Source of the DNA: Epithemia pelagica
Taxonomy: Eukaryota; Protista; Bacillariophyta
Direction of reading: 5' to 3'
DNA length: 64,000 nt
Assembly: GCA_946965045.2 (NCBI GenBank)
Contig: OX337231.1
Span: 2,170,001 to 2,234,000 of the forward strand
Part shown: positions 1 to 55,856 of the stretch, one piece after another
Layout: each line of letters starts with the position of its first letter
How positions within the stretch are numbered: position 1 is the stretch's first letter
The notes under the pieces: model-generated
The model's database searches: none
What the model was told of the DNA's origin: nothing
What the model saw: the letters and a program-made list of their open reading frames with translations, nothing else
Translations under genes and position numbers: made by a program

Positions 1-1
1 C

Positions 2-568
2 TTTTCCGTCCGTCCTCAGGTCCGACCCCTTCCACCCTCTCTCAAGAATATTTATTTGGAATTGGCCACGGACCCCAATGTTCACTTTGATCCGGCCAAG
101 GGCGAAACGCCTCCCCAAACCTATTCCAATAATGCCATTCCGCCTCATGGCCATTTGATTCGTTGGGCACAACAAGGAGTCTTGCTGATCAATACTGTCT
201 GGTCGGTTCGACGAGGAAAGCCTCAGTCTCACCAAAAGCAGGGATGGGAACAAGTGACTTCGGCTATTTTACGAACCGTCTTGGCCTCCCGTCGCAAGGG
301 CAAGAAGGACGACAAGGTGGTCTTTTTGTTGTGGGGCAAACCGGCGTTGGAACGTGTGCAAAAGTTACAGGCCGATCTTTCCCGTGCCGTCATTTTGTCC
401 AGTTCGCATCCCAGTCCTCTGGGAGCGCGCAAAACCTCTACGCCCTTTATTGGCAGCCAATGTTTTGGCATGTGCAATTTCGCCCTGCAACGCATGTGCC
501 AGACGCCCATTGATTGGAATGTCGATGGACCTCTCCCTACAAACGACGGGACATTGGCCAGGGATTGA
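2..568 (+). CDS. UNG: Uracil-DNA glycosylase family 1, C-terminal part (5' end lies outside the window)
   Basis: The frame from position 2 reads FSVRPQVRPLPPSLKNIYLEL, then WAQQGVLLINTVWSV, HQKQGWE, VVFLLWG and SHPSPLG, which are the canonical UNG motifs. Confidence 0.93.
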   Translation, partial: FSVRPQVRPLPPSLKNIYLELATDPNVHFDPAKGETPPQTYSNNAIPPHGHLIRWAQQGVLLINTVWSVRRGKPQSHQKQGWEQVTSAILRTVLASRRKGKKDDKVVFLLWGKPALERVQKLQADLSRAVILSSSHPSPLGARKTSTPFIGSQCFGMCNFALQRMCQTPIDWNVDGPLPTNDGTLARD

Positions 569-729
569 CGAGTCTATCTCATCCAAATACATCTTTTCGT
601 TGGAGTCTTCAATTGCAGTTTGTCTAGGAAAATTATCTACAGAGTTACTTATAACCAGTTCGAGAGAATGTCCGAATTGTGTGTCTCCTCTACTAGCCGC
701 TCACCGTCGTTTCCTTGCCTCATTTTCGT

Positions 730-1531
730 TTAGAAGAGGGGCTTGAAAAAGTAGGGAGTTTCGGCCACGACGGGAGATCGGTAGAGGGCTTCTTGGACGA
801 CAAAGCCCAAAATGGCCATCATGGCCAAACGACCATGTTTGATTTCCTTGGTCCTCATGGCCATTTGACCAGCCGAATCTCGAGGGAAAAAGCCAAGGGG
901 ATCAAAGCCACAATCACCGGCCGTGTAATCCTTACCCTTGCTTTCTCGGACCTTGTCATTTTCAATTTCGACAATGCCAGCCAAGAGAATGACCAAGACC
1001 CAGTACAAGGTGTCAACCTTGCCCAATCCACCATTCAACAAGGAAGGACTGGCACCGGTCTTGGTCAACAAGGTGGACATGCCCATGGCATCGGCCAAGG
1101 GCTTGTCAAACAATTCGGCCAAGGGCCAGCCCACAACAGCCAACATGGCCAAACGAGAATGTTTCAATTCCGCCTCGCGCATGTACATGAGACTGGCCTT
1201 GTCGGCACCCGCAAAGTTAAAGGGACTTTGGTGATGAAACAAGAAACAATGCCTCGCATTAGAAGGGAGACAACACAACAGAAATGTCGGTATGTGCGAT
1301 CCAGACAACTTACTCAAAGCCAACATCTCCGGCCATGGTACCATCCAACAACTTTGGTCTGGGCAAAAAGGGAAGGGAGGGAGACATGGATTTTTGCGAG
1401 GACGAGCCTTGTTCGTCTTCGTCAAAGAGAGCATAGCGTTGGACCGCGCTCGATGTAGAAGTCGATCGGCTGGAAGGGACAAAGGCTGTCACAGAGACCG
1501 TCGAGAGGAGAAGCAAAAAGGCCTTGAACAT
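730..1531 (-). CDS. Light-harvesting chlorophyll a/c antenna protein, probably Lhcr-like; 2 exons (1531-1314, 1225-730)
   Basis: Signal peptide with TAF-VP (ASAFAP-like). PSLPFLPRPKLLDGTMAGDVGFD|PFNFA joins across a GT-AG intron at 1313-1226. Helix motifs EAELKHSRLAMLA and KEIKHGRLAMMA are present, plus GFDPLGF. Confidence 0.93.
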
Positions 1532-2078
1532 GATGATGGTGATGATGATATTAAGGATGGTTGTGTATGATAAAGATTTATGGCAACAGAGCGGGGGTTA
1601 GACGTTTGACAACAACTTTCACACCGCCAGCGCAGGAAAAGCGTGAGAGGAATGGAAATACAAGTATCTTGTGTGATGGCTGTTGGACCTTGCACACGAG
1701 CACGAGACACGTCGATAGCTCAGTCAGTCGTTGGTTGACTTCTGGGTTGACGGCGGCGTCGATCAAGAGAGATCGAGAAAGCGACTGCACATCAACACCG
1801 AGATACCAATCGTCGAACTTTTCTGATCTCATTGTTGTGTTGGAATGATGCGCTGTATGCGACTGACTCATCTTGCGACTGACTCACGCGCGCGCAAGCA
1901 CAGGCGGTCAGAGGGGCAACGGACAGACGCGTCGTGACGTATTAGACCCGAAGAACGATCCATCGGGTTTGCCACTCTGTTGTCATCGCATATCGCATAT
2001 TCTGCAGCGGGAGCGGAAGAGAAGTCGATCTTTGGGTATCAGGTATTAGACAGTCATCTATTGTCTTTATGCAACAAC

Positions 2079-2885
2079 ATGTTGACGATTCGTCAGTGGT
2101 GTCGTCCAAAGAGCTACAATCGTCTTGGCTCATTCCCCATTGTTCTTGATCAATTTCCAAAGCAACTGAGATTCCTTTCGTCCGACAGTCCGCCGTCCTC
2201 CTCGGCCAACGAGTGGGACGAACAACAAGAAGAACGTGAAATTCTACAAGAGACGGCGTACTTGGCACGATCCTTGTGTCGGTTGTGTTTTCGTTCCACT
2301 CGGTTGTTACGGGTGGCGAACGAGAATGATGAAAAGGAATTTCAACAACGCGAAGAAAAAGATTTGGCCGATCAAGAACAATTGCTTCGCGATCGTGCCG
2401 CCGATTCCAGACTCACATTCTTGTCCATGTTACCACCCGTCAATCGAGAAAAGGAACTGGCCTCACGATACGAATACTATTGTCAATATACGCGTGATTT
2501 GTTTCGGGCCGAAACGGATTGCTTTTCCTTTAGCTCGGATACTCGAACAGAAGGCTTGGATCAAACCAACTTGAACCGCTTTGTGCATCATCTTCGCAAC
2601 GGTGAGCAACAACGGAGATGGCTCCTCAAAGATATGAAGTACAAGGATCCCTACAGTAAGGCCTTGGACCTTGCACGGATCAAGAAATTACAAAAGCGTG
2701 GGGAGGCCTTTTTTGAGCGACGGCAACGTCGAATCTATGGCATGGACCAGGAGGACCAGTTTCTGGATCATGACGAAAAAGCGGAAGGAGATGTTGATCA
2801 CGACAATGAGGAATGGAAAGATTTTCATGATGATGAAGATGAAGACGACCATGAAATCTTTCAGAGAGGTCGACCCAGATTGTAG
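2079..2885 (+). CDS. Hypothetical protein with acidic C-terminus; possibly organelle-targeted, with a weak LYR-like pattern
   Basis: ORF 1980-2885 with first ATG at 2079; charged helical composition. The resemblance of LARSLCRLCFRS...YTRDLFR to LYR proteins is weak. Confidence 0.55.
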   Translation: MLTIRQWCRPKSYNRLGSFPIVLDQFPKQLRFLSSDSPPSSSANEWDEQQEEREILQETAYLARSLCRLCFRSTRLLRVANENDEKEFQQREEKDLADQEQLLRDRAADSRLTFLSMLPPVNREKELASRYEYYCQYTRDLFRAETDCFSFSSDTRTEGLDQTNLNRFVHHLRNGEQQRRWLLKDMKYKDPYSKALDLARIKKLQKRGEAFFERRQRRIYGMDQEDQFLDHDEKAEGDVDHDNEEWKDFHDDEDEDDHEIFQRGRPRL

Positions 2886-2954
2886 ATTCTGTTTTCGAGG
2901 AAAATTGGACACCACCAAAGCCACGCTTTTTTGCGAAATACCTTTCGGACCGCT

Positions 2955-4791
2955 TTACAATCGAGATCGCAACGTTGATCTTGGGGTCGGTTTTGTATCT
3001 TTGGAGGGAAATGTTTTGCACGCATAATGTGTGTCTTCATTGAGGATCCGATCAAACAACAAGTCACCAAATGCGACAGAGGGAGGGTAGAATCCACCAC
3101 AAGAACCGCTCGTTTGGTTGGAGGCGGAAATGGGCAAGTCGCATTCATTTGTATGGGCCAAACACAGGGCCGCTTCGACCATCATGCGTGCCGTTTCCAA
3201 ACATCCCACGTCTTTGGTAAAGTACAAGGCCACTTGTACCCGATTTCCATGGACACCCACACCCTCTCCCGTAATGTATTGATAGTTTTTGGTTTCCATA
3301 CGTTCTTGACTAGGCCCTTGACCGGGTTGGAAAAATACAAATCGTTTCAGCAAGTCATGGGTTAGGGGATTGCCCATGAGGATCATCATGGAGACGGCTC
3401 CACCAAAATAATTGCAAAAGGCGGTCCGGAAATTGGGAACCACTTGCTGTTCCGAGTACGTCAAGTGGGTGTGTCCAACTTGTCGGAGGGCATGACTCCA
3501 TTGTACCACCTTGGCATTGACACCCGCCATGACAAACGGAAGCGTCCAACGACCACGTTTGTCACCATGACGATCCCATGGAGAATTGGACGGCGCAATA
3601 AAGGTGGGCAAATTGGCTTTGAGACGGTATTTGCTTTTTCGTCGTCGTATTGTTCGTTTGGGAATGTCAGCACGATTGACATCATCTTGTTCTACCGGTA
3701 CACGCAATAGGGGATCAATTGAAATCGTCTCTGCCGACGGAGAAGAAGATGATGATGATGACATGGGTGGCGTGTCCAATTTGCCCTCGGCCGAGGCATT
3801 GAGGGTGGCCAGGGTCCCACCTGGAGCGGTGAGTCGGAATTCATCCCAAAATGTGACCGACTCCAAATCATCCTGGCAGTCACGACGTAGCAATTGTTGC
3901 ATCTTCCACACCAAATAATCCCAGGGCACGGAATCGTGACCACAAAAGGGAACCAAGATTGCACCCGTTTGTTCGGCCGTACTTTGCCATTGCGCAATCA
4001 TGGAACGAACCCAGTCGGCTTCACCTGTAGAGAGAGAGAGGGAGTGATCGTGGCAATACTTAGTTTTGTCGTGGACCAAATCAAACACTCATCTCTCACA
4101 ATAACAGAGCTGCGGGATCACTCTTCGTTACGGACGTACCGGTAATGTCTACATAATGGGTTCCATACTTGGCACAAAATTCCACCACATGAGACCCGTA
4201 CAAGCCATAGGGTCCAGCCGTGGTCGCCACGACGCGGGCATGGGCCACCAACTGTGGCAAGGTTTCGGGGACCAAGGTATCCACCACCACAAGTTCGGGG
4301 ACAGCCTCGTCATTGTTTTGCCACTGTCCACCAAAGTCACGAATCAATTCTCGTTGCAATGCTTCCAACTTGGATCGAGAACGACCGGCCATGGCCCACT
4401 TGACTCTGCGTCGTTGCGAACGAGAATTCCGTTGATTGTAGGTTTGTGCCAGATAACGAGCTGCCAGTCGACCCGTAAAACCCGTCACTCCCAAGAGTAC
4501 CACATCATAACGTCGTTTCGGTCGAGGAATCACCTTGCTTGGAACGTGACCGGAATCCAATGGTGGTGGTCGTCGTCGAGACGACTGGTCCTTCTGTTTG
4601 CGGTCCGAAGATGGTTGGACAGCATTCCACAAGGCCTTGCCACTTTGATACGCCACCGAAAGGGGCAAGGCCGTCACAGACAAGACAGGAAGCATGGTGG
4701 CCGTGGCCACAAAATCCGACCAGGAGGACCCCGGTGGTCGATGTCGGGCATGGCGAGGAATATCCACTGGCTGCTCTAACAATGAATTCAT
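2955..4791 (-). CDS. Saccharopine dehydrogenase-like oxidoreductase (SCCPDH / trans-acting enoyl reductase family); 2 exons
   Basis: Rossmann motif YDVVLLGVTGFTG, WAMAGRS and TTAGPYGLYG. HYVDITG|EADWVR joins across a GT-AG intron at 4139-4025. C-terminal VGCLETARMMVEAALCLA and GGFYPPSVAFGD. Confidence 0.88.
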
Positions 4792-5369
4792 GATCCTCTA
4801 GCAAAACCTCGGTCGGTACTCTCCAAGCACAAGTCTATTCCCACGACTTCCCACGGCAAGCAACGAGCTCTGGATTTTGTTTGACAGAGTAATTGAACTC
4901 CTCAACACTCAACATATATCGTAGCGAAATAGCTATCGATCTACCGATGATCATGCGATCTACGTCAGCATGTTCAGTCAAAATTGAAGCCAATGCCTAT
5001 CTCATTTTTGTGCATCTGCCGTGTAAGTGCGACAGCAAAAGTAGAGGAATCTTACCTTTGTACACTTCACGCTATAGTCATCATTTCTTGTGCAGAATAC
5101 ACCCCAGAGATCCTATGTGATATTGACCAGCAGGGAGTATTTTCATATTTTGATTATAAGAATCTTTGAGCAACATCTACACGATATTTACCGCTGGGGA
5201 CAAGGTGCTTCTCCTATGCATTTTTCAACTTTCTGCAGTCTGTGCTCATTTTTTTTGTGACGGAAACTTTTCAAACAACAATGCTCCTCGAAAACGAAAA
5301 TGGAGGAGCAATCCTCTCGTCCTCTCACAAAAACATTAACCAAACAAACGCCAAACCAATTCATTCACC

Positions 5370-5963
5370 ATGTTCGCAGCACCTTCAGATCTCAGCCGAG
5401 CAATCACCCGTGGAAAGTGGTCCTTGGCATCGAAATTGGCCAAACAATTTCCCGAACAAGCCCGAAAAACGTCCAACCGTGAAGGGTTGTTCGATGGACG
5501 GACCAACGCCAAAGTATATCCGATTCATGAAGCTCTGGTGGCAAATGCTCCCCTCAGTTGTATCAAGGCCCTGGTGGAAGCTTATCCGGCCAGTCTCACC
5601 AAAAAAGAGTCCTCGTTTCATCGATTGCCATTGCACTGCGCCTGTCGCAAGAATGCCGATCCTGCCGTCATTGCCTATCTGGTGAAAAAGAATAAGAAAG
5701 CATGTTTGGAGGAAGATTCCCTTCAACGCCTTCCGGTGCATTATGCATTGACCAATGGAGCCAACCCTCAAGTGGTATCCATCTTGGTCAAGGCGGATCC
5801 AGCATCGGTGCGTGGCTGCGACTACTCGGGCTGGACACCGGTCCATGTGGCCCTCAATGTGTGTGCACCACCCACCACAGTGGCCAGCATGCTCAAGGCC
5901 TTTCCAGAATCCGTCATGCTCAAAACAAACAAGCACACGAGCATTCGAAGCGTGATACCCTAA
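5370..5963 (+). CDS. Ankyrin-like repeat protein (LPLHxAC-type repeats), possibly truncated by an early stop
   Basis: Repeats YPIHEAL, LPLHCAC, LPVHYAL and TPVHVAL. The same frame stays open for 41 more codons after the TAA at 5961-5963. Confidence 0.75.
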   Translation: MFAAPSDLSRAITRGKWSLASKLAKQFPEQARKTSNREGLFDGRTNAKVYPIHEALVANAPLSCIKALVEAYPASLTKKESSFHRLPLHCACRKNADPAVIAYLVKKNKKACLEEDSLQRLPVHYALTNGANPQVVSILVKADPASVRGCDYSGWTPVHVALNVCAPPTTVASMLKAFPESVMLKTNKHTSIRSVIP

Positions 5964-6534
5964 AGCAGTCCCTATCGCCAGGAACACCGACAATTGATCG
6001 AGGAGACACAAAAAGTGGTCCAACTGGACTTGCACTTGCCTTCCTTGCGTTATAACTCCATGCGGGCCAGTCGATTGATGATGGTTTAGAGCAACGAAAA
6101 CTACGATGCCCACCTGTAATTTTGCTACATAACATCTTTGAATACATTGACTTCAAACGCACAGAGCTCTAGGAAGGAAATCATCTACTAGAGTAGTAGA
6201 GTTCCAATGCTACAAAGGCAGTGCGATTCACGCTAGCCGACAGCTATAGGAGTGGCTTTATGTTTTGAAAGAAGAAACAAAAGATACTCCCCCTACTCGC
6301 GTATCTTCAGAAAATCCAATTGGTATCGCATTAAAGGGAACTCTCGTGGCCCATTCTCGTTATTTTCTTTTCTAGAGATCAATCCAATGTCATGCTCTTC
6401 GATTAGATACTCAAGCCCGCAAAACGGATGGACGGGAGCTCATCGTGGATTGTTAGAATATGACTCCTCGTTCATCGCTTCACCAGTGGCGCAAGAACTG
6501 TGGATTCATCCCGACGAGGGGTTCCACTAACGAA

Positions 6535-8496
6535 CTAGTACTTGGCTTTTCGATGCTTGGCATGTTTCAATGACTGTTCGGCTTCTTGAAAAAATTCGAC
6601 AGCCGTCATTCCTTGTCTGTGTTTGGCGTATCCAAAAGACGCCGTAGTTTGAACGGGGCGATTTTCCATGTCCAGGATCCCATTCAACGAGCTAGATATG
6701 GCTAGGATCACTTTTTGGATCTCCTCATCGACACTTGCTCGTATGAGTAAACAAAATTCATCCCCTCCATATCGGTACACCTTGTTTGGATACTGGACGA
6801 CACTTTGTAGTTTTTGACCAACTTGCCGCAAGACGTGATCGCCATAGAGTAGAGATGTCTTGTTGAAATCTTTAAAGTTGTCAATATCGAGAATGACCAA
6901 AAACTCAAAATCAAGATTTGACATATCACGCCAGAAGCACCCTTGGTCTTCCAATCGCGTTAGGAAATCAGCATTGCTCAAGGGAGGAGGATGGCAATCA
7001 AAGACACGTAGATTTTCAACAATATCGACCGAGTGTGCCATCTTGGAAACTTCTTCAATTTCAGAGTCTTTATAGTCTTCGTTTGGATAACTTGTTAGCT
7101 GGATCGCTCCGAACGGTACATCCTTTCGTAAAAGCGGGACAATCAGCAGGTTGACATGGTTGGTCGACTTTGGATCCTTCATTGCAAATGGAGTGTGCTT
7201 GCCATTCACAAAAATCGCTTCCGATAAATACGATATCTTGCCACGTTCCCCACTGCAGGGAAAGGAGAGAAACGGTTTGGAAGGCGATTTGGAACCCGCC
7301 CAATCTCGAAACATTCGGCCCGTGCTCGAGTCTTTACCCACGGCAAACAGGCACATGACCAGAGGGGTTGATGTTTCTTGCGTGGAGTTCACCCCCGTTG
7401 GAGGCGTAAAGAGAAAGAAGGTGGCAATTCTGGTCGTCCGTCTCAGAAATCTACCAAGAAAGTCCATGAATAACGCATCGACTCGTTCATGAAGGCGTGC
7501 TACATGTTGATGAGTCCAAAGGGCGTTTCTTGTAACGTCAAAGACCTTGAGTACCGACTCATCAATCGACAAGTCTACTTTGCGCCGTTTGTTTCGTGCG
7601 ACTGTCTGGATCCGTTGTCGTGCCTCTTCCATTCGTTCCTGGAACTTTACCCGGTAGGAGGGGCTCCAATCCCATTGGTCGGATCGAATCCATTTCTGTT
7701 GAAAGGCTTGGACGGCCAGTCGCACACTGTCACGGCGCAAAAGGGTCGCCAAGTTTTCCAAGGCATCGAAATTGGACAAGGAATGTTGCTTCTTCCATGC
7801 CAGCAAAACGTCGAGAATCGAATCTTCGTCTCGCTCGAGAAACTCCTTGGCCGTACGGTAATCTGCCGCCACAAAGTAGTTTTGGGCCAAATCCAAGAAA
7901 CTCACCCCCAACGTAGGGCCCAAAATGGTTGGTTGACTTGGGTCCGTCAAGGCCTTGCACGCTATATCTGCAATTTGATGGGCCATTTCCAAGAAGGTCC
8001 TTCTCTGAATTTGATGGACTTTGTACTCGGTGGTATTTTCCAAAAAGGATTGAACCGTATGATCATCCAACAGTGTATCCACAGTCTCTTCCAAACAAAT
8101 GAATCGAACCTTGATTCGGGGCCCTTCCACTCCACCTACGGCGGCTCGATCCATTTCCCGAAAGCTTTGTAGCTCGGCCACACACGCGGTGCGCTGAAAG
8201 TAGCGTCGTGTCAAGAGGCACAGCGCCACGCCATTGCCGCGGAGTTGCAAAATGGCGTCGGCGAGACCATTGTGGAGATGGCCTTCCAGTCGCTCATCGA
8301 GAAAGACACTGGCGACCCGGAACTGTTGACGGCATCGCTGGTGAATCGAGGATTCTACCAGGCGAGCCAACTGTCGAACCGATCGATCCTGGTCGGAATC
8401 CGAGAGAGGGATTCCTAAACTCTCCACCGCATCTTCACCTCCATGAAAGCTCAGAAACACGTCATATCGCTTTTTGTTGTTTACTTCATGTGACAT
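6535..8496 (-). CDS. TIR - helical linker - GAF-like - GGDEF (diguanylate cyclase-like) multidomain protein, single ORF
   Basis: TIR: YDVFLSFHGGED, VFLDE, CLLTRRYFQRTACVAEL. GAF-like: LLIVPLLRKDVPFGAIQL. GGDEF: VILDIDNFKDFN...GDHVL, RYGGDEF (6754-6768), TASFG, AEQSLKHAK. First ATG at 8496; the ORF track starts at GTG 8538. Confidence 0.88.
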   Translation of the reverse strand: MSHEVNNKKRYDVFLSFHGGEDAVESLGIPLSDSDQDRSVRQLARLVESSIHQRCRQQFRVASVFLDERLEGHLHNGLADAILQLRGNGVALCLLTRRYFQRTACVAELQSFREMDRAAVGGVEGPRIKVRFICLEETVDTLLDDHTVQSFLENTTEYKVHQIQRRTFLEMAHQIADIACKALTDPSQPTILGPTLGVSFLDLAQNYFVAADYRTAKEFLERDEDSILDVLLAWKKQHSLSNFDALENLATLLRRDSVRLAVQAFQQKWIRSDQWDWSPSYRVKFQERMEEARQRIQTVARNKRRKVDLSIDESVLKVFDVTRNALWTHQHVARLHERVDALFMDFLGRFLRRTTRIATFFLFTPPTGVNSTQETSTPLVMCLFAVGKDSSTGRMFRDWAGSKSPSKPFLSFPCSGERGKISYLSEAIFVNGKHTPFAMKDPKSTNHVNLLIVPLLRKDVPFGAIQLTSYPNEDYKDSEIEEVSKMAHSVDIVENLRVFDCHPPPLSNADFLTRLEDQGCFWRDMSNLDFEFLVILDIDNFKDFNKTSLLYGDHVLRQVGQKLQSVVQYPNKVYRYGGDEFCLLIRASVDEEIQKVILAISSSLNGILDMENRPVQTTASFGYAKHRQGMTAVEFFQEAEQSLKHAKHRKAKY

Positions 8497-9764
8497 GAAT
8501 GCCGGTTCAAGTGTCGGAGATGCGTCTATCCATACCACTGGTTAGATTCCGACGATGGTTGCCTTTTGGATGTGCTGCCCATTCAAAATTCAAACTATAT
8601 TTTTGTTGCATTCCAATCCGTGTCGGAAGAAGTCTCTCATGGTTGTTAGCGGACTCTTGCAAACAAACAAACGTGCATGATTTACAAGACATTCAGCGTG
8701 ATGGATATCAAACGCTGGGCAATAGGAAATATGCCAACCGACTGAGAGATAGAGGAGTCTATCCAACACGCTCGATTATTATTATTTCTTTTACCAAAGT
8801 GACATCAAAGGAACGACCGACACCGTGGAACGAGAGCATGTGCAACGGAGACATGGTCACTCCTTTCAACGACTTTTCTCCACTTTCAACAGCTCTCTTC
8901 CAAGATCCAACATCCAACAGTCCAAGTCTTGATTTCTTGAACGGAGCAACGGACATGACCTCTCGATCCGTTCCTTTCTTTCTCTCCAAGTTTCTGCCGT
9001 TGCTACGATGGTTGGTGGACTCCGCCGCCCATCACCAGTCGTTCGAGGATGGGGTCCAAGACCAAGATCAGCCTCGCCGACCGCCGACCACGAGACACAA
9101 GACTAAACCTCTTTGTTTACCAAAGAGTACGTGTCTCCCGCACGTTTGAGCATCAATCGTCTGTCGTCTGGCACGTCCAAACTTCGGACTAGTGTGTCTC
9201 GAAAAAAGACATGGTCGCCGAACGCCGAACACGAATTCCTTCCTACGCTCAAGCGTGATAACGTGATTAATAGTTTGAAGTTGTAATGAAATATTTACAT
9301 TATCACGATAGGTTGTGATTTCCATTCTTGTTTGGGGGTTCGGAATGGCCCAATCCCCCACAACACCTGCCAGTTGGCGAATGTCACGCCGTGGCCACGC
9401 AATCGTATTCGTAGACGAGAACGAAAACGAACCCAAGAGTTGCGTTTGCGATCCACCCAAAGTTTGGGGGCCCAACGGACATGGGCGCGCGCTTTTCCTA
9501 CCAATTTACAAGAGACTTCGCCATCCCACATCCCACACTACTCTTTTTTGGCTCTACTTACACTTTGGCGCCGAAACTTGCTTTCGGGTCACCGAACTTT
9601 CGCCCCACCACCGCCATCGAAATCCATCTCGTCTCGTTCTGGTTTGTAGCTTGTTGTAGTTGGGTTTTGCACCCGAGTCTCTCTTTTCTTTTAGCAATCA
9701 CCACACCACACCGTCTCATTGAAACCACAAACAAAACGACACACTACACCCAGTTTCGAGTATC

Positions 9765-10595
9765 ATGACTTCTCTATCAACCACAAGCACAACCAACAAC
9801 AATAGTCGAACGTTTTCGAGCATGACTCCATTTCGAAGAGGCAAAATACGAGCCCGACAACCGGAAACGTTTCACACCAGCAGCAGCGAGTGTCCCTCCC
9901 CGCTGCGCGAGACTACGGACCGTTTCTCCCGCAGCCTCTGTGAACCATGGCATTCGTTGTCACATCCCGAACATGCCGCCGCCGCTGTAGTTCCACAAAG
10001 CGATTCTCCCGAAGATGTTGTTGTTGTGCAATCACTGGAAGAATCTCCTTCCTCCTCGTCGTCCGCTTCCTTGACGGATCGACAAGAACAATTGTGGATG
10101 CATTATCGATCTCATCCTTCTCACGAAGGCCGCAAACAACGACCGTCGGTATTCCGTCGTCGCCACCAACGACGACAGCTCTTGCCCGAAGAACCCGTTC
10201 CCGCCTTGTTGGATTTGCAGCAAACGAGTAGTCTGGGCAGTAGTAGCAGTGAATGGACCGAAGACAAGGACACGACGAGTGAAATGGATCATGGCAGCAC
10301 CACGACAAGCCAGGAGATTGCCACATGTGGCAGTCTCGAAGTCTTTTCCGAAGAGGAGGACCACCACGACGACCAGGCACGTTGGAGCTATACGTCCATT
10401 GACGATGAAATTCCCCGACTCTTGCGGCAAGACCGATGGATGGACACTCCTTTGATTGTATCGCCAGCACCCAAAGAGGTCTTTGACGTTCCGGTCGATG
10501 AGGAACCCACAGCTCCTATCAGCGAACACCGACGAACGTTGGCGGCCACCGCCTGGAACGTGATTCATGAACTGGACAGCATCTTTGGTCCCTAA
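9765..10595 (+). CDS. Hypothetical low-complexity, probably disordered protein
   Basis: 276-aa ATG-started ORF rich in S/T/E; no recognisable domain. Confidence 0.5.
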   Translation: MTSLSTTSTTNNNSRTFSSMTPFRRGKIRARQPETFHTSSSECPSPLRETTDRFSRSLCEPWHSLSHPEHAAAAVVPQSDSPEDVVVVQSLEESPSSSSSASLTDRQEQLWMHYRSHPSHEGRKQRPSVFRRRHQRRQLLPEEPVPALLDLQQTSSLGSSSSEWTEDKDTTSEMDHGSTTTSQEIATCGSLEVFSEEEDHHDDQARWSYTSIDDEIPRLLRQDRWMDTPLIVSPAPKEVFDVPVDEEPTAPISEHRRTLAATAWNVIHELDSIFGP

Positions 10596-10841
10596 CCAAC
10601 GCGCAACCAGAACGACTGCACTACGTATTGTGTTTGTAGTGTCCGATTCGCAAAACTATTTTAGCTAGCCGCTTGTTGCAATAGAATTAAAAGAGTTTCA
10701 TACTACCCTTGATAGCAATAAGATCGAATGGCCTACGCTCCAGAGAAAACAACATAGGAGTATCATCTATCTCACAGTAACAGTTTGTGAAGAGATTAAA
10801 GAGTCACACCGGGGCCAATCGTTACGTGGGTGTCGTCCTAC

Positions 10842-13800
10842 TTACGATTTGCGATACTCATTGGACGAAGCCACAAAGACGGCTTGCACCAAATCGGACC
10901 GTGTACACGAGGCTCGACAGGTGGGACAGGTGGAGGATTTCGTCATCCATTGGCTCCAACACGACTGACATGCCACATGGCCACAGGGTGCCATGAATGG
11001 TTTCGGATTGGCTTGATCACACAAGGGACAGGACAGACCCTTGGGGGCATTGGAATCGGGTCCCCTTGTGTTTTTGGACCAGGACCGCACAAAGACTTGA
11101 GATTCCGCCTTGCCCAGCACAGAACCAAGCGAATGACGTTGAGGAACTTGTGGGGCCTTTGTTGACTTGGAATTCTTTTTATACGGGTTGGTTATGCGTA
11201 ACGGCGCAGTCGTCGCCTTGGTAGATGGAGGAGGATCCTTTGGTGCCGTTACAGGCTTGGTTGGTTCCGAATGGTTTGGGGGTGGTATAGATGGTTGCAG
11301 AGGCTGGACTTGTTGTTGTTGTTGTTGTTGTTGTTCCAACCGAGGTATCTTTCGAGGATTTTGTTCCGCACCAGTTTTGAATGAGGCAGAATCGGCAATG
11401 GATGAGGACGGCTTTTTGCTCTCCGATGGGCGAAGATAAGGGTTCTTGGGCACTGTCGACGAGGAGGATGTTGATGACATGGAACTTGGACGTTTGCGAA
11501 TGTATGGATTCTTGCATGGTTCTGGTTTCGTTCCAACCAGAGGTTCCTTCGGGGTGGTGTTGGTCGTCGCGGGCGGGAAATGACTGCTTCGTTTCGGCAA
11601 GGCAAAGCGACGCATATCCATGCCTGCCGCACCGACGCGTGCTCGATCCCGTTGTTTCAACTCATCCATTTTCTCTCGGGCCGTCATGTCATCCACAATG
11701 GTTTGGGCTTGTTCCTTGTAACGCAGAGGGATCATACGGACAAAGGCGGCACACATGGGGCGTGATTGACTCTTGTCGGTGCTTTTCCCGTGCAAGATGG
11801 ACAGTGCTTCATGAATGTCTTCTATCAATGGCCGAGGATCAGAAGAGGTCACCAGTGAAGACGAGTCATCTGCATCTGTCACCCATAGCTTTTGGATCAC
11901 ACGCAACACGCAGCATTTCAAACGACTGTGGTCGGCAGGGGCAATGCATTTTTTGGCAATGTCATTGAGAGGCGAGGCTTCAAAAATCATGCGGTAGGCC
12001 AAACTTTCCGTATCTTTTTTGTATGCTTGCGGTAAAAGCTGAAAGAAAATTGATAATAGACTTTCCTGAGGCGCTTGAGTCAGTTTGTCACCGCTGTGCC
12101 GAATCAAAATGTCGAGAACCTGGTGCGCGTTCTGATGATAGGTTCGTCCATCATGAGCATCACTGGACTTCTTCATGGTGACAATTGCCTTGCGTATCTT
12201 GGCTTGATCAGCAGTGGAGAGGGATTTGGTTCCTTCCATGAATCGGACGGCGGACTTATCACGAGCTTGGGCCTTGACCTTCGGAGGACGGGTAGATAGA
12301 GCGGACTTTGCAAACACACTGTCATACGAGACTGGCTTTTTGGTAGTGTTGCTCCCTTGACTGGGTCGGGAACTTGGATGCGATGATGGCTGGTTCATTG
12401 ATCCAAGAAGAGTGTTTGAACTCACTGTGGCTATGACTTGATCCGGTGGAATATACGAACCCGACACCATGGAATCTACTTGTGACTGTTCAAGAGAATT
12501 GGCCGACGGTTTGGCCTCCATGCGACGAATCAAGGCAACCTTGGCACAATTTTCCGTATTCTCTTCATCATCCTTCTCAAACAATGGCGGGCAGGCTGGT
12601 GCGGCTGGTATTGCGGGAACAAGTTCAAATGATTTCGCCTGAACGGCTTTGTAAAATTGCCTCAAGTCTTTCTCAGCCAAAGCAAAGCCTTGGTCCTTGA
12701 GCACGTGTGGCCGAATCCATTTGCTTAACCCCAGTAGATTGCGGTCTTGGTCAAATCGTGAATCCAGCAGCAAGACTGCACCATAGTCGGTGCGACTTCG
12801 AATCACTCGACCAACAGCTTGATTGACGGCGCGGTGTGCTTGTTGCGTGTACCATTCATTTCCGGAAAGCTTGACCAGGGAAGACGACACGGAAAGTCGT
12901 TTCTTGTCTTCGTCCGATGGCGAACTAAAGCCACCGTCATTTATCTTGAGTTGTTGTTGCTGCTTGGCTTGGCTGGCCACTCGTACGGCCCCGTCCAAGT
13001 ATTCTCGTTTCAGTTTGACCTTGGCATCCATGGCGGGGGCAAAGGGAATACCGGTAATAATCACCGCACGACTCATGTCATTGGCAAAATCAATTCCCTC
13101 ACTAATCTTTCCCCGACAAACGCCCATCAAGATGCAACCGGGCGAGTGTGGCAAGTTCAAGAGTCTTTGAAATTCCGCAATCGCCTCATTCAAATCGGCC
13201 GAGGACCGGGGTTCCAATACCACGGATTTCACTTCCAGCAGTTTGTGCCACAAGGATTGAGACAGTGTGGATGACGACGAAGGGATTTGGGGAAAGACAA
13301 ACTGATTGACGCCGGTAGACGCTTTTTTCTTGCGTCGTTGTTGGGGCGCAAAAAAGTCTGTTTTCTTGGTGTTGCCTCCAAAGGAAGACGACGCCGACGG
13401 TCCACCCCACTTTTCAAGACAAGCATCCATGACACCATAACTTGGGAAAAAGACAAGGACACCAGCCGGTATAACTTTGGTCAGCCTCACAAGGGTTGCG
13501 CCTAAATCTTTGTAGTAGTCGGCATTCTTTCGGTTTTCGTAGGAACTCGACAAGACTTGGTTATTCACGCCTCTACCAATCACTCGAACATGGAGTTGCT
13601 GCTTTGCATCAATAATGTGTGGATTCTCCAAGGTATGTGGAAAGGGCAGGCCCAATTCCATACTGTAAGAAGGCAAGGGTGACAATGTCCCGGATGTGAC
13701 CAGAATGGAACGGACATTGAGATTGGCCAATTCTTCCATGGCCAAGGCAGGGGCAAAACACCAGTACGATATGGTTCGACTGACAGGACTCGGATTGGTT

Positions 13801-15386
13801 TTGCTGTTTGCGCCATTTGTTTTGTTGTTGGGTCCTCCGCGTACAGGTCCGGTCTCTTTGGGTGAAACGTGCTGCGTCAAAGCCAACGAAAACAAGCACA
13901 ACAGCGCACAGTATAAGGTTAAAAGGACAATTTGCGCAAACATCTCTTGTTCTGGAGCGATTGCCCTCGGGGAACGTACCACGCGATAAAAGCTAGCCTT
14001 GGCAAGACACTTGCTTTCGAGTTTGTGTCCAAACACTCGTTTCATACAGGTTGCAAAGTGCTCGAGTCGGGGCGACCCTCGGATGGCACCCGTCCCCTTG
14101 AGATCCAAAATGACTTCATTGACTTTGCGAATTTCTTCCAATAAAATTTCGTGATTGCCATGGGTAATGCCAGCGGCTTGTTGCAAAAAGTGCATCATGA
14201 ATTCTCCACCAAAGGCCGTCTTGGAGGCCGGAATTCGATGCACCAAATAGTCTTCTAATTTCAAAAAGATTGCCTTGAGACGCACCAAGTTGTCAGCCTT
14301 TAACATGGACTGTTCCCCCGATGACGAAAGGACGTGTAAATAGTTGAGAGCTCGATCCACTTCCAGGACACAGCCGGCCAAGTCGGTGTTGGACAAATCA
14401 AAGGAGGCGGAATCACTGGCAAAGGATTCCAAGTTGTGCGCTTCGTCAAAAATTACCACGGCATTGTTCCATGGGACATCCTGCAAGGTGGTTTCCCGTG
14501 CATCCTTGTCAAACAAGTAATTGTAGGGGACCAGAATCAATTCGGCATTTTCTACCAATCCTCGAGTGTAATAAAAGGGACAAACATTCATAGTCTTGCC
14601 CATTTGAACAAGCTCTTCCATATCCATGACTGGTTGATGCTGTTGCTGCGAGGATGAGCCACAACAGCCGGATTGGACCTCGGAAACATCGAGAACTTCA
14701 TTGGAGGGTGGCACAAAGGATCCACCATCCAAGGCATTGCGAAATCGACATTTGCGTTCCTTGCCTAACTTGTTGCAATCATGATTGATGTCACTGGCCG
14801 ATGCCTGTGGCTTTTTCACTTTGGGATGCACGCACATGTGTTCTCGACTCCCCAATACGGCATGACTGGGACGATAGCGGGTGTTGCGTAGTTCACGCAC
14901 CACTTGGGACAATTGCGAGTGGGTCCGACTGGCGTAAATAATGGTGGGAACTTTGGTTTGTTGCTGCTGGGAATGTTGTGGTTGTGGATTTGTTTGTCCT
15001 GTCGCAGACCCTGTCGATTGAGAGCTCGTGGTTGTTGGCAATTGGCTGCCGTTCATGAGCAATTGGGCTTGCGACCGTTGCCAGGCCAAGGTGGAACACA
15101 ACAAACACAAGGTTTTACCAGTTCCAGTGGGAGATTCCAACAAGGCATTTTCGGATCGTGCCAGAGCTTTCAAGACTTTGGTCATGTAGTCTTTTTGACA
15201 TTCGTATGGTCGAAAGGGGAAATGCACGGTAATTCCGTTGCACAGCTCCACCGCCGTAGGAGGAGAGGCTGGATTGACCTTGCGACGAATCCGTACTTGT
15301 CCTTGCGCATGTCCTGGCTCAGATCTACCGCCACCACTACCACCACGGCTGGTCCCTCCGATTCGTTGCTGGACCATTGACTTCAT
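10842..15386 (-). CDS. RTEL1: RTEL1-like Fe-S DNA helicase (XPD/FANCJ family) with C-terminal C3HC4 RING finger
   Basis: ESPTGTGKT, YASRTHSQL, LGSREHMC, CPFY, LVPYNYL, DEAH, TSGTLSP, CRGKISEGIDF, QAVGRVIR. C-terminal CPLC...CGH.AC..C...CPTC. Probable in-frame 108-bp GT-AG intron at 13979-13872. Confidence 0.85.
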   Translation of the reverse strand: MKSMVQQRIGGTSRGGSGGGRSEPGHAQGQVRIRRKVNPASPPTAVELCNGITVHFPFRPYECQKDYMTKVLKALARSENALLESPTGTGKTLCLLCSTLAWQRSQAQLLMNGSQLPTTTSSQSTGSATGQTNPQPQHSQQQQTKVPTIIYASRTHSQLSQVVRELRNTRYRPSHAVLGSREHMCVHPKVKKPQASASDINHDCNKLGKERKCRFRNALDGGSFVPPSNEVLDVSEVQSGCCGSSSQQQHQPVMDMEELVQMGKTMNVCPFYYTRGLVENAELILVPYNYLFDKDARETTLQDVPWNNAVVIFDEAHNLESFASDSASFDLSNTDLAGCVLEVDRALNYLHVLSSSGEQSMLKADNLVRLKAIFLKLEDYLVHRIPASKTAFGGEFMMHFLQQAAGITHGNHEILLEEIRKVNEVILDLKGTGAIRGSPRLEHFATCMKRVFGHKLESKCLAKASFYRVVRSPRAIAPEQEMFAQIVLLTLYCALLCLFSLALTQHVSPKETGPVRGGPNNKTNGANSKTNPSPVSRTISYWCFAPALAMEELANLNVRSILVTSGTLSPLPSYSMELGLPFPHTLENPHIIDAKQQLHVRVIGRGVNNQVLSSSYENRKNADYYKDLGATLVRLTKVIPAGVLVFFPSYGVMDACLEKWGGPSASSSFGGNTKKTDFFAPQQRRKKKASTGVNQFVFPQIPSSSSTLSQSLWHKLLEVKSVVLEPRSSADLNEAIAEFQRLLNLPHSPGCILMGVCRGKISEGIDFANDMSRAVIITGIPFAPAMDAKVKLKREYLDGAVRVASQAKQQQQLKINDGGFSSPSDEDKKRLSVSSSLVKLSGNEWYTQQAHRAVNQAVGRVIRSRTDYGAVLLLDSRFDQDRNLLGLSKWIRPHVLKDQGFALAEKDLRQFYKAVQAKSFELVPAIPAAPACPPLFEKDDEENTENCAKVALIRRMEAKPSANSLEQSQVDSMVSGSYIPPDQVIATVSSNTLLGSMNQPSSHPSSRPSQGSNTTKKPVSYDSVFAKSALSTRPPKVKAQARDKSAVRFMEGTKSLSTADQAKIRKAIVTMKKSSDAHDGRTYHQNAHQVLDILIRHSGDKLTQAPQESLLSIFFQLLPQAYKKDTESLAYRMIFEASPLNDIAKKCIAPADHSRLKCCVLRVIQKLWVTDADDSSSLVTSSDPRPLIEDIHEALSILHGKSTDKSQSRPMCAAFVRMIPLRYKEQAQTIVDDMTAREKMDELKQRDRARVGAAGMDMRRFALPKRSSHFPPATTNTTPKEPLVGTKPEPCKNPYIRKRPSSMSSTSSSSTVPKNPYLRPSESKKPSSSIADSASFKTGAEQNPRKIPRLEQQQQQQQQVQPLQPSIPPPNHSEPTKPVTAPKDPPPSTKATTAPLRITNPYKKNSKSTKAPQVPQRHSLGSVLGKAESQVFVRSWSKNTRGPDSNAPKGLSCPLCDQANPKPFMAPCGHVACQSCWSQWMTKSSTCPTCRASCTRSDLVQAVFVASSNEYRKS

Positions 15387-15977
15387 TGTACGGGTTCAAC
15401 ATTGGACATTGGAAGAATGGATAGGGCGACGATCGACGATGCAATGAGAGAGATTTGAGAGCAATCAAAGCCATGAAAAATGCTTCCAACACGAAAAGGC
15501 GCGGGCCAAACGAGGCCCGCGATTGACCGTTATTTCGCGCCGGGGGACCTCAACTCCACATTACACAAAAGTCGCCGAACCATCGAAACAGATTTGATCG
15601 TTACCTAACAAAATACAAAATTCGTGGACGGGTAACTCCCGGGGCCTTGATGATGGAACCGTAAGGTAAGAGAGATGTGTAGCTAACTTTATAACTGCCA
15701 ATACAACTCGTATGTCAAAGCAAATGAGCGAGCAAAATGATGATTATAACAGAATCATCATTATTTCAATCCATTGCAATCAAGTCAGAGAATAGCTTTT
15801 CATCGCCATAAGGGGCAAGCTGATTCTCCGTGAGTGAATGCATGGACCCCCAAGAAGTTGCTTTTGGCGCGTACCAAAACTCTTGTCCGTAGGAAGAATT
15901 AGTTGTGATACCAGCCGTGTCATGGGATGCCGTTTCCGGTCGCCCGACTGATCACATGACATTCAGGCAGACGCCAC

Positions 15978-17986
15978 TTATAGTCGGCAATAATCCGTAC
16001 TTTGAGGGTTTGCCATTTCTTCTTCTTCATTCTCGTCCTCTTCGTCAATTGTGGGTGTACTATTAATTTCCAGCTGTCGATTGAGGGGGCTTGTTTTGCT
16101 GTCGACATCGGCCTCGTCGCAACTTTTGGTCTGTAGCAAGGGCGGCAGCGTTTCGGGCATGGCGACTAGATAGAGTAGCGGAGGTACCCAGGACAAGGCG
16201 GACAAAATGCCAAAGACTTGCTGATAGCCCAAATCTTGAGCCAGCGCTTCTCCAACATAGCCAGACACGGTGCAACCAATGGAGATTGCGGCAGTGGTTA
16301 ATCCCAAGGTCATGCTAAATCGCCCCGTCCCACCCGAAATGTCCGAAGTGACCAGAATGTACATGGTCCCAAAGACACCAAGTCCAATTCCTCCGAGCGC
16401 TTGCGTTGACAAGATTAAACAATTCATCAGTCCCAAACTCTGGTCCTTGTCATCCCCACGCAACTTCAACAAGAGTGCCAACAAGGAACATCGGACCGGC
16501 AATGACACGAGACCAATCAAGAACAAGGGTTTGCGACCGTAGGTTGTCGAGTATTTGCCACAAAGTTTGGCAGACAGAGCCATGAAGGATTGAGAGACCA
16601 CCATGCACATTCCGGCCAGATACATACCACCGGCCCCGGACCCAATCGCCAATGTTTGCATCACCAGAGGAAGCACAGTCGCATTCGCCAAGTTGAATCC
16701 AAACACAATGAGAATGAAAATTAACAGCACCGGATCGCAAAGCACCCGCAGGGGAGAATCGGCTTTGAGAAAAGTGACGGTAGAACCATCGGCCCACGGT
16801 GCAACCACCTCGAGTGCCGTCCCATCCATACAACCAAAGTTGAAACTGGGAGTTTTTTCGACTGGTTTCCGAACATTTTGTTGCGCAGCCTCGAGCATTT
16901 CAGCTGGACTGAGAGGACCAGTTTTCTCTGTTGTTGATGGAGTGGGAGGAATGTACTCGATTCTCTTGCCATTGTTGAAGCATGACGAAAGGTCGTCCGT
17001 CTTTGCACGCTGAATAGCTGTCAAACCGCGTGCCTCGTTGTGGTCAATCCAGTTTGGATCAAGTTTACAGAGAAAGAAAAGAAGACCTGCACAGGCAACA
17101 GGTGCAACCAAAAATAAAAGTCCCAGATCGGGAAAGAGCCACATGGACAAAAGAGAGCTCGCCAGAGCAAGAACGACCGTCCCCAGATGATTCATCATTT
17201 CATTGTTTGCCACTTGATTTGTCATTCCAGCCACTCCGACAATACCCTGTGTTATACTGTTCAATCCGGGAGGAAGAAAAGACGTTGCGGCTCCCTGAAG
17301 AATCTTAATAATGATCATTAATGTCATGTTTTGCCCCTCTGGTTTGGCCAACGCGGCGGTTGCCAAAGTCAAGCATGTCGTTGATACGGCGGCCGCTGAA
17401 AACCATGTTACTTTGTCATCACTGTAGTCATACAAATATCCTGCTGGTGCTTGAAAGAGAAATTGGCTTACCCCAAAGACTAAGAATATAATCGCGATGA
17501 TGTCATGAGAAGATGGTTGATTCACAAACTACAAATGGGGCGACAAACCACCGAGATTCCCACGTACCGAAAAATAACATTCCTCCCTGTTTCTCAGTAT
17601 ATTCCTATTGAAATGAAATTGTAGAACTGTCAGATTGATGTAAAAGGGCGCTTTGGTTCGTCGCCTTGACACGATGAGAGAAAGCGACTGACGACAGCAT
17701 TCCGTCCCATTTTTTCTCGACAAACGACTCCACGTACTTTCGACACAATGAGGAATGCATTCTGCATGTTGATCATTGTCAAACCATCTCGAATATCGCC
17801 CAGGAAAAGTGACGCCCATCGTAAGATTCTCCTGCAAGAAAAGATCACAGAACGCGTGAGACATGACGACAACAGCGAATGGCGAAGGATGTCGTCTCAT
17901 CTTTTTCAATGACACCTTGCTCACCTTGCTTTGGCCTTGTTGTCCTCTTCTCTTTCGGTTGACGGGGCCTTGGTCAAACCGCTCAT
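15978..17986 (-). CDS. Major facilitator superfamily transporter; 4 exons
   Basis: Joining across GT-AG introns 17924-17832, 17737-17605 and 17567-17480 gives MSGLTK...RRILRWASLFLGDIRDGL...QAPAGYLYD. About 12 hydrophobic segments, GRKPLF loop and GTGRF motif. Confidence 0.85.
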
Positions 17987-18862
17987 GCTCCACTCGTACT
18001 CGAGTCTTGTTCTTTCCCTATACTAGAATTGTTCGTTGCTCTGATGGTTCATAAGTCATAAGGCGCTCTTTACTCGTTTGTCTCTCGATGTTGCAGAACA
18101 AACAAAAATGCAAATCCTGGTCTTGTGATCATCGGTTGGTCGCTTCTCGCTTGCTTTGTCTGTTGTCTCCACGAACGGCAGGACAGCGCTATTTAACCCC
18201 TACTTATTTCTCAATATCACTACATATTACGTTAGAGTCTTGTTCCCATCGCCAACGAGGCGTGCTTGGAATCTGGGAGACAATTACTTATGCCTCACGA
18301 ACTGAGAAAAATACAATGGATGTTGAATGGGATTACTTATCGTATTTGAACGTGCTCCAACGCTCACAAGCATGGCGGCTCCAACCAGTGCACACAAACT
18401 ATGCGCAAACTTTTGAACCACAACATCATCATCATTGGTACAAGAAGGAAGAAGAAACGAGGAACGAAAATGTGAGTGGTCCTTTGTATTTCGGCTCACT
18501 GGGTTGTCGAACGAGGCTCTCAGCGCTGGGGTTATTACAATGGGACGTGAAGCATCGAACATATGACTGTTCCATGCAGCGGGTACTCTTTAGAGTTGCT
18601 TCTCTACAATCTACAAGCTGTAGATAGAGGGACCAGTCCAGATATGGGAAACACAAACCTAGAATTATTGGGGCTCGATGATGCATACTCCGACTCTTAT
18701 TGTCCCAAACGAAATCGAATATATTGAAGGCACCAAAGACTGCTGTCTAGAACACAGTCTAAGAGAGAACCCCACTCAGTAAACACACAAGAAAACGAAG
18801 AATGAACTACCGAGTCAGCCGCAAGGTGCAAACCCACAATCCTGGGATCCTGGCTTGTAGAT

Positions 18863-55090: not shown

Positions 55091-55856
55091 TAGTAGAATT
55101 CTGTCAGTACACGCTCTAGAAGAGCCACAATCGATTACCAACTGATACCAAGGTTCTCCACGGGTCAGAGAACAAAGGAAACCCAAGGGTTCTATCGTAG
55201 GGATAGTCAGGACACTGAAGACGTGATGATATGGTAATGTTAATGATTGTGAGCTTACTACTAGGTTTGGTGTGTGAGATTTCCATTCTTGTTGTCGATC
55301 GTGTGAAATAGGTTCTTGGCGGTGATAGGTCTGGAATGGTTGGAGTTGATGTATGTGAGGTATAAAACATGTATATGTGCTTGTATATCATATACAGCCT
55401 CAACGATTCTTGGCTAAAGTTGGTATATGTAGTTTTGTTGGCGCGTCCTTGTTTGCAATCTTGAAATAGTGGGAACGATGATATGGTCTCGCGTGATCGT
55501 GATTCGTGCCTTGTGTACTTAGACCGTTGGGTCGGATACATGATCGCCACGCTCGGATAGTTCTTGCGCGCATCTTGACGAATTTGGGCGCGCACGCTTA
55601 GGGCATAGGTCAGGCTCGGATGTTCAACGGATGATCATCCGTTGATGGGATATCAAGACCAAAGTTGATTCTTGATAGCACGTTCGTCAATCTGTTCTCA
55701 CTTTTTGGTATATGCGACCGAAATATAGGTTGAGCTAGCGCGAAGCTAGGTATGTAGTGTGGATGTAGGTGATGTAGGTGATGTTTGAAGCCACGGGACT
55801 CGACTAACCGATGAGGTGCCGAACCTAACCGATGATTTTTGGTGAGAGTTCTACTA
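55091..55856 (-). repeat. Element C 3' LTR (TA...TA)
   Basis: Direct repeat of 62553-63318, with terminal inverted repeat TAGTAGAA...TTCTACTA. Confidence 0.95.

Follow-up and report, generated by a model that had tools for sequence, protein, structure and literature searches.

A diatom gene joining a TIR-type domain to a predicted diguanylate cyclase

Our subject is a single gene in a 64,000-nucleotide stretch of Epithemia pelagica DNA (GenBank assembly GCA_946965045.2, contig OX337231.1, positions 2,170,001 to 2,234,000). Throughout, "the window" means this whole stretch. The gene lies at window positions 6535..8496 on the minus strand, as do all of the parts described below. It is a real nuclear gene, kept by selection, and its host is a raphid pennate diatom. 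The encoded protein has four main parts: a plant-like TIR domain, a helical bundle, a divergent GAF-like domain and a GGDEF diguanylate cyclase domain. Our preferred reading, to which we give a probability of about one half, is that the product is a soluble diguanylate cyclase, controlled by its GAF domain and by oligomerisation, and tied to a TIR/NLR-type network. Note that the finding is built from known kinds of domain. It is their combination that is undescribed as far as we have searched, and its interest rests on predicted biochemistry.

The list of open reading frames (ORFs) has an ORF at 6535-8538 on the minus strand, corresponding to 667 amino acids if counted from a GTG start. The first ATG, at 8496, gives a protein of 653 amino acids (coding positions 6538-8496) followed by a stop codon at 6535-6537. 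The coding sequence is intronless and complete, because an orthologue from another sample, P0223, starts and ends at matching positions. An initial annotation, made from the DNA alone, had also described an intronless ORF, with three parts in the order TIR, GAF-like and GGDEF. That order stands, but the helical bundle (residues 186-299) brings the number of parts to four. The motifs quoted in the same annotation were all found in place. Briefly, YDVFLSFHGGED is residues 11-22 (8431-8466), CVAEL is residues 105-109 (8170-8184, with the Glu108 codon at 8173-8175), LDIDNFKDFNKTSLLYGD is residues 536-553, QYPNKVYRYGGDEF is residues 568-581, and the AK near the C-terminus is A646-K647. No transmembrane segment is predicted in the 653-residue protein by the Kyte-Doolittle method with 19-mers, for which the maximum score is 1.22.

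The GGDEF domain, at residues 506-653 (6538..6981), is identified by Pfam, NCBIfam, matches in the Protein Data Bank (PDB), an AlphaFold2 model and Foldseek. Pfam PF00990 scores 70.7 bits against a cut-off of 23.8 (E=1.6e-19, profile positions 35-158 of 161). NCBIfam TIGR00254 agrees, with 61.3 bits against 37.4 (E=8.5e-17). Sequence matches of this region among PDB cyclases go down to 1e-9. In the AlphaFold2 model, the domain has predicted local distance difference test (pLDDT) scores of 81-94. Foldseek superposes it on the GGDEF domains of T. maritima and SadC (4urg, 4urs, 4wxw) with a target template modelling (TM) score of 0.81-0.83 and a root-mean-square deviation of ~2 Å. The catalytic set is present: D537 and D539 (DID, 537-539), N545, G552-D553, R575 followed by YGGDEF (576-581, with GGDEF from G577 to F581), and K647. 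The two DID aspartates, N545, D553, R575, GGDEF and K647 are all invariant in the orthologue. DFLT is also present (D510 to T513). The GGDEF domain and its intact active-site residues, as initially annotated, are confirmed. At the inhibitory site (I-site), RxxD has given way to Q568-Y-P-N571 in the window protein and to G-A-R-S in the orthologue; the loss of RxxD that had been proposed is borne out when the window protein is aligned with a solved cyclase. The protein is a candidate synthase of cyclic di-GMP (c-di-GMP). We also considered a Hypr-type GGDEF, which would make cyclic GMP-AMP (cGAMP). This is unlikely, since the specificity aspartate, D553, is kept in both orthologues.

At the other end of the protein, residues 9-185 (7942..8472) form a plant-TIR-like domain. 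The call is made from structure, because the Pfam, NCBIfam and PADLOC profiles give nothing significant for a TIR in this protein. Traces at the level of sequence are as follows. The NCBIfam FxsC TIR-like model matches weakly (E=0.0046), and four relatives in the family described below have sub-threshold TIR_2 matches (E 2e-4 to 9e-3). When the N-terminal 200 residues were compared with the PDB using phmmer, the result was no better than E=0.72, to the RPP1 TIR. A profile of the region shared by the family gave 14 weak PDB matches (E 0.01-0.55). TIR proteins account for 11 of the 14, and these align at the beta-A and CxxEL motifs. In the window protein the corresponding sequences are YDVFLSFHG in beta-A and ACVAEL, containing Glu108, in alpha-C. 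An AlphaFold2 model of the N-terminal part, built from the family alignment, has a pLDDT of 93.2 and a predicted TM score of 0.91. It consists of an alpha/beta domain (residues 13-183) and then a six-helix bundle (residues 196-299). In Foldseek searches of the PDB, the best 29 matches are all TIR domains, most of them of plant resistance proteins, with probabilities of 0.85-1.00 (mostly ~1) and target TM scores of 0.5-0.63. The top structures are plant RPPT, RUN1, RPP1, RPS4, L6, RPV1, SNC1 and AtTIR, together with bacterial AbTir; SARM1 and Cat1 TIR structures are lower in the list. Glu108 aligns with the glutamate of plant WCLDEL (AtTIR and RUN1, and likewise RPP1). A glutamate occupies the catalytic position in 29 of 34 family members and in both cyclase-linked orthologues. 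The residue before the cysteine of WCxxEL varies in the same alignment, being Trp in 12 of the 34 and Tyr in 8. The modelling thus establishes that the N-terminal part has a TIR fold with a glutamate at the catalytic position; any NADase activity is putative. Of the TIR originally annotated, the fold and the glutamate were upheld by the model and Foldseek, but a match to the Pfam model was not obtained.

The helical bundle, of ~110 residues (186-299; 7600..7941), was recognised from six high-confidence helices in the AlphaFold2 model. It ends in a KW..W.W motif (residues 266-277). In an alignment of the 34-member family, G193, K268, W269 and W277 are nearly invariant. The bundle is always found together with this type of TIR, and no structural match of its own was obtained. 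Relatives of the combined module were identified by an exhaustive search with residues 1-520 against 1.84 billion representatives of ~15 billion proteins. Approximately 35 cluster representatives share residues 4-300, at 30-43% identity. What follows the module differs between them. It is joined to NB-ARC and WD40 propellers in P0133, P0136 and P0161, and to NB-ARC alone in P0138, P0151 and P0143. In P0183 the partner is a protein kinase (Pkinase) with Sel1 repeats and, in P0139, a Roc GTPase. Many other TIR+helical proteins stand alone, at ~300 amino acids. The family comprises P0132-P0189 and includes loci L004:5526-9947 and L005:2057-2959. It looks like an undescribed repertoire of NLR-like and TIR proteins. 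The distribution would fit a signalling module that sits at the N-terminus of NLR-like receptors and of the proteins that partner them. Sharing of the module with NB-ARC-WD40, kinase and stand-alone proteins is the strongest argument that the cyclase works in an immune-type signalling context. The window protein itself has no NB-ARC or NACHT NTPase domain according to Pfam and NCBIfam.

Between these two ends is a divergent GAF-like sensor domain (residues ~316-500; 6997..7551), called from profile matches and the topology of an AlphaFold2 model. It is preceded by a basic linker (residues 300-315; 7552..7599), which has low pLDDT in the model of residues 301-653 and is 44% identical to the orthologue. 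A GAF-like segment had been annotated at about 7030-7430; its GAF-like nature stands but the domain is wider. Pfam GAF_2 is below its cut-off (13.5 bits against 28.6, E=0.085, residues 443-490). Residues 436-500 match the C-terminal halves of true GAF repeats in multi-GAF proteins. Similarly, an hhalign comparison with aligned true GAF domains has a probability of 93.6% (E=2e-7), restricted to the last 52 columns (beta5-beta6-alpha5). The end of the domain is typical of GAF: LLIVPLLRKDVPFGAIQLTS ... ENLRVF. The AlphaFold2 model of residues 301-653 has GAF-like topology, with pLDDT of 58-85 and disordered loops. For this model, Foldseek ranks the GAF-GGDEF cyclase Dcsbis (4zmu) first; the alignment takes in both domains, over 348-380 columns, but most of the score comes from the GGDEF. 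No match in the PDB was found with a profile made from three sequences of the GAF region. Overall, the identification of the middle part as a divergent GAF-like sensor is moderately supported. It is the best conserved domain between the orthologues, at 52% identity. It also contains a conserved insertion of ~35 residues (~395-430; window 7180-7290; FRDWAGSKSPSKP..., FRDWAGSKSPSKPFLSFPCSG..., FRDWAGSK.PSKP...). Bacterial GAF domains have no counterpart of this insertion, but the two orthologues, 42% identical overall, have it almost unchanged. Its role may be that of a lineage-specific element for binding a ligand or forming an interface. A Pro-Pro-Pro linker (residues 503-505; 6982..6990), invariant in the orthologue alignment, separates the GAF-like and GGDEF domains.

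The orthologue, P0223, is a protein of 719 amino acids encoded on an independent 3.1-kb contig from a different sample. It aligns with the window protein over the full length, at 42% identity, and its four parts follow in the same order. Across the GGDEF domain, identity is 41%. A poly-A tail was looked for on this contig and none was found, so transcription is without support from that source. The architecture is otherwise very rare: two clusters among ~15 billion proteins. In the exhaustive search, just two clusters go on matching after the N-terminal module, in the linker and the GAF region. By Pfam and pairwise alignment, P0001 and P0223 are the only proteins confirmed to have a GGDEF at the C-terminus. 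A word-based homologue search with the whole protein returned the allelic copy alone. Searches with the GGDEF region reached no more than 35% identity, and the proteins matched were all bacterial or unlabelled. No relative carrying the N-terminal module was detected in JGI metagenome contigs or IMG/VR viral contigs, where the single metagenome match is an ordinary GGDEF protein, nor in one genome each of 185,579 bacterial and archaeal species. We rejected P0012 (JGI metagenome, 796 amino acids), a match of seeming strength, as close kin; it has five tandem GGDEF domains (Pfam 638 bits) and its score is additive.

In a phylogeny of GGDEF domains, the two diatom sequences form a clade with support of 100/99, on a long stem that is unplaced among bacteria. 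Neither a donor lineage nor an origin of GAF-GGDEF as one block was demonstrable from this tree. The distribution of the family points to a bacterial origin for the GGDEF. A bacterial GAF-GGDEF gene would have been acquired long ago and later fused to a host TIR module, and the fusion probably took place before the divergence of two lineages whose proteins are now 42% identical. As a separate observation, the terminal branch of P0223 is 1.14, compared with 0.27 for the window protein. In addition, P0223 has EVSIG in place of TASFG, and differs at the Ala that precedes the catalytic Lys. In that lineage, the cyclase domain may be under relaxed constraint.

GGDEF is an overwhelmingly bacterial family and this architecture occurs in just two sequence clusters. 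Both facts would suit an artefact: contaminating bacterial DNA, a chimera made during assembly, or a horizontally transferred gene in decay. Contamination or chimerism had been named at the outset as an outcome that would overturn the annotation. The evidence speaks firmly against it and we consider such an explanation very improbable. The translation is identical to a stored protein, P0005, on a 1.6-Mb contig. A second copy, 98% identical in protein sequence, is on a 0.8-Mb contig that has 96-97% nucleotide identity to the window over 22 kb. The ORF is therefore continuous on two haplotype contigs, amid eukaryotic genes and retroelements. This second copy is either a haplotig of a highly heterozygous diploid or a second strain. 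The haplotypes differ by 42 synonymous and 14 non-synonymous codon changes, for a ratio of non-synonymous to synonymous rates (dN/dS) of ~0.10. None of the changes is at a functional residue. The ORF has a GC content of 0.485, and of 0.518 at third codon positions, equal to the genes beside it. These encode a chlorophyll a/c-type light-harvesting protein, an RTEL1-type helicase with a RING finger, an ankyrin protein and an MFS transporter. The best named relatives of the light-harvesting protein are all from raphid pennates (Epithemia, at 85%, Entomoneis, Nitzschia, Cylindrotheca, Pseudo-nitzschia and Seminavis), which agrees with the diatom host initially proposed. The same fusion exists on an independent contig from another sample, and the query protein is without relatives in the 185,579 prokaryotic species covered. 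Contamination, mis-assembly and a pseudogene are thus rejected because of the haplotype copies, the eukaryotic neighbours, composition, dN/dS and the independent orthologue.

How might such a protein work? GGDEF enzymes act as dimers, with one GTP bound per monomer. TIR enzymes need self-association to form their active site and, in NLRs, oligomerisation is what activates the N-terminal domain. We envisage that the GAF domain would bind a small ligand and dimerise. The TIR+helical module would self-associate, or dock onto other proteins with the same module. Two GGDEF half-sites would be brought face to face, and two GTP molecules would be condensed to c-di-GMP. Because RxxD is lost, the product would be made without feedback inhibition through the I-site. 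The TIR, with the catalytic-position glutamate kept, might also cleave NAD+ once assembled, or be a mere surface for assembly or docking.

Both catalytic activities, the direction of signalling and a biological role in defence or stress signalling are predictions, and so is the signalling to bacteria that was initially suggested. Several observations weigh against this reading. In the GGDEF domain, the NRR of DxLTxLxNRR is absent and reads EDQ, helix alpha-1 (before DID) is ~10-13 residues shorter than in bacterial homologues, and the Tyr of MYxAK is Lys. The ND of the ND..GH loop reads NK; the loop as a whole is NKT-SLL, altered and one residue shorter than in a solved cyclase, as the initial annotation had said. 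Such deviations, at near-invariant positions, could lower or abolish activity. The Pro-Pro-Pro linker replaces the usual continuous signalling helix between GAF and GGDEF, and so the usual control of a GGDEF by its sensor may not apply. Turning to the N-terminal domain, Pfam TIR and TIR_2 models do not match the window protein at E<1. Both the window protein and its orthologue have Ala for the Trp of WCxxEL, and the window TIR has SFHG for SFRG. Finally, the NLR-like relatives of the module are sequences from unlabelled assemblies of the SRA, with eukaryote-like contigs.

These points can be arranged differently. Suppose that the GGDEF is a non-catalytic module for nucleotide binding and dimerisation. 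The GAF and GGDEF together would then be a sensor that triggers assembly of the TIR, and cleavage of NAD+ would be the sole enzymatic output. The altered near-invariant positions and the shortened alpha-1 helix fit this idea, as do the long stem of the diatom clade and the very long branch of the orthologue. It also accommodates the conserved Glu108, and the paralogues in which parts for sensing and oligomerisation (NB-ARC-WD40) come after the TIR+helical module. Conversely, the full catalytic set is kept in two proteins that are only 41% identical across the domain. Moreover, the known receptor-type GGDEFs (PelD-like proteins, for instance) have lost GGDEF but retained RxxD. The window protein shows the reverse, with GGDEF kept and RxxD lost. 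On balance we think a non-catalytic GGDEF unlikely. The opposite division of labour, with c-di-GMP as the sole output, is one that we doubt to a similar degree. In this case the TIR would be a non-enzymatic homotypic adaptor, as in animal TLR/MyD88, that recruits the cyclase to TIR-bearing NLR-like receptors. Occurrence of the module on receptor-like, stand-alone (~300 amino acids) and enzyme-linked proteins is the pattern of an adaptor network, and the Trp of WCxxEL has become Ala specifically in the cyclase-linked pair. Against this, Glu108 is kept in both orthologues, as it is across most of the family (29 of 34), and its nearest neighbours in structure are plant and bacterial TIRs with catalytic activity. 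We continue to favour a cyclase controlled by GAF and oligomerisation, with a TIR that may or may not be enzymatic.

Other features of the window are noted for completeness. Positions 1-18548 are 96-97% identical to the 0.8-Mb contig (L001, from ENA assembly ERZ21939226), with many insertions and deletions, and synonymous divergence (pS) in the ORF is ~0.095. ORFs of copia-type retroelements are found at 26028-31677 (+), 35395-36618 (+) and 55854-61520 (-). They include two RVT_2 reverse transcriptases, with near-equal scores, and a retroviral SH3-like domain. The region from 22 to 38 kb, which holds retroelement ORFs, has strongly negative GC skew. An ORF of 677 amino acids at 19003-21036 (-) has a SLAC1-type anion channel domain (E=1e-29) and, at its C-terminus, a hemerythrin domain (E=2e-8), and is possibly an O2-, NO- or iron-sensing channel fusion. 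Elsewhere there is a DUF6824 protein (48382-50487, -; E=7e-29), a PPR-repeat protein (39746-41989, +) and a protein resembling spermine/spermidine synthase (43771-45261, -). Some long ORFs in the window are without a Pfam match, for example 2955-4088, 9765-10595 and 46246-47796.

Full-text literature searches found neither a diatom GGDEF protein nor a TIR-GGDEF fusion described, consistent with the expectation that this architecture would be new to diatoms. From the sequence, our analysis suggests that some diatoms may make a bacterial-style second messenger themselves. This matters because diatoms are ecologically dominant and in intimate contact with biofilm bacteria. The fusion would also physically join two chemistries, NAD-derived and cyclic-dinucleotide, that bacteria and animals link through separate proteins only. 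Furthermore, the TIR+helical module points to an undescribed TIR/NB-ARC-WD40 repertoire in microalgae. Note that bacteria-like STING proteins (blSTING, prok_STING) have been reported from the pennates Nitzschia sp. Nitz4, Cylindrotheca closterium, Thalassionema and Thalassiothrix (PMC10732462). The authors of that study ask how blSTINGs work in organisms without CD-NTases (PMC10732462). For blSTINGs in protists that lack cGAS-type enzymes (PMC10732462), a diatom GGDEF enzyme is a candidate source of ligand. Taken furthest, the window protein would be an endogenous cyclic-dinucleotide synthase of diatom innate immunity. It would be assembled with TIR-bearing NLR-like receptors and make c-di-GMP that is read by bacteria-like STING. 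We regard this as improbable. If true, such an axis, from NLR to GGDEF to STING, would answer the question raised in PMC10732462; it is not described in the literature searched.

Among known systems, the bacterial GAF-GGDEF cyclases, such as Dcsbis (PA2771, PDB 4zmu), resemble the window protein in the order of GAF then GGDEF and in having an intact active site, and provide the best structural match for the whole model. Unlike them, the window protein is eukaryotic and nuclear, and begins with a TIR+helical module. It further differs in the 35-residue GAF insertion, the Pro-Pro-Pro linker, the absence of RxxD and the short alpha-1. Identity to these cyclases is just ~30-35%. Dictyostelium DgcA, which we compare by description, is likewise a prokaryote-type GGDEF enzyme encoded by a eukaryotic nuclear gene, but belongs to another supergroup. 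DgcA is not known to carry a TIR or GAF domain. Synthesis of c-di-GMP is regarded as essentially bacterial, with DgcA described as the established eukaryotic diguanylate cyclase and exception (Chen and Schaap 2012, as cited in PMC5055082). If active, the protein studied here would give a second eukaryotic lineage able to make c-di-GMP.

The TIRs of plant TNL and TIR-only proteins (RUN1, RPP1, RPS4, L6, AtTIR) share with the window TIR its fold, the (Y/F)DVFLSF(R/H)G motif and the glutamate of CxxEL. As in plant TNLs, relatives of the module place the TIR at the N-terminus of NB-ARC proteins. Unlike plant TIRs, the window TIR is below Pfam thresholds, with His for Arg in SFRG and Ala for Trp before the Cys. 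It is also trailed by a helical bundle, and fused to a cyclase instead of NB-ARC-LRR. Bacterial TIR-STING and CBASS systems have in common with the window protein a TIR and cyclic-dinucleotide chemistry. According to one comparative-genomics study, GGDEF is occasionally the signal generator in prokaryotic conflict systems (PMC7159879). The window protein has no CD-NTase, STING or other cyclic-nucleotide receptor domain in Pfam, and no significant match in PADLOC. In TIR-STING and CBASS, a separate CD-NTase makes the signal and STING reads it, whereas here the GGDEF synthase is itself fused to the TIR. The logic of TIR-GGDEF signalling may therefore run in the opposite direction.

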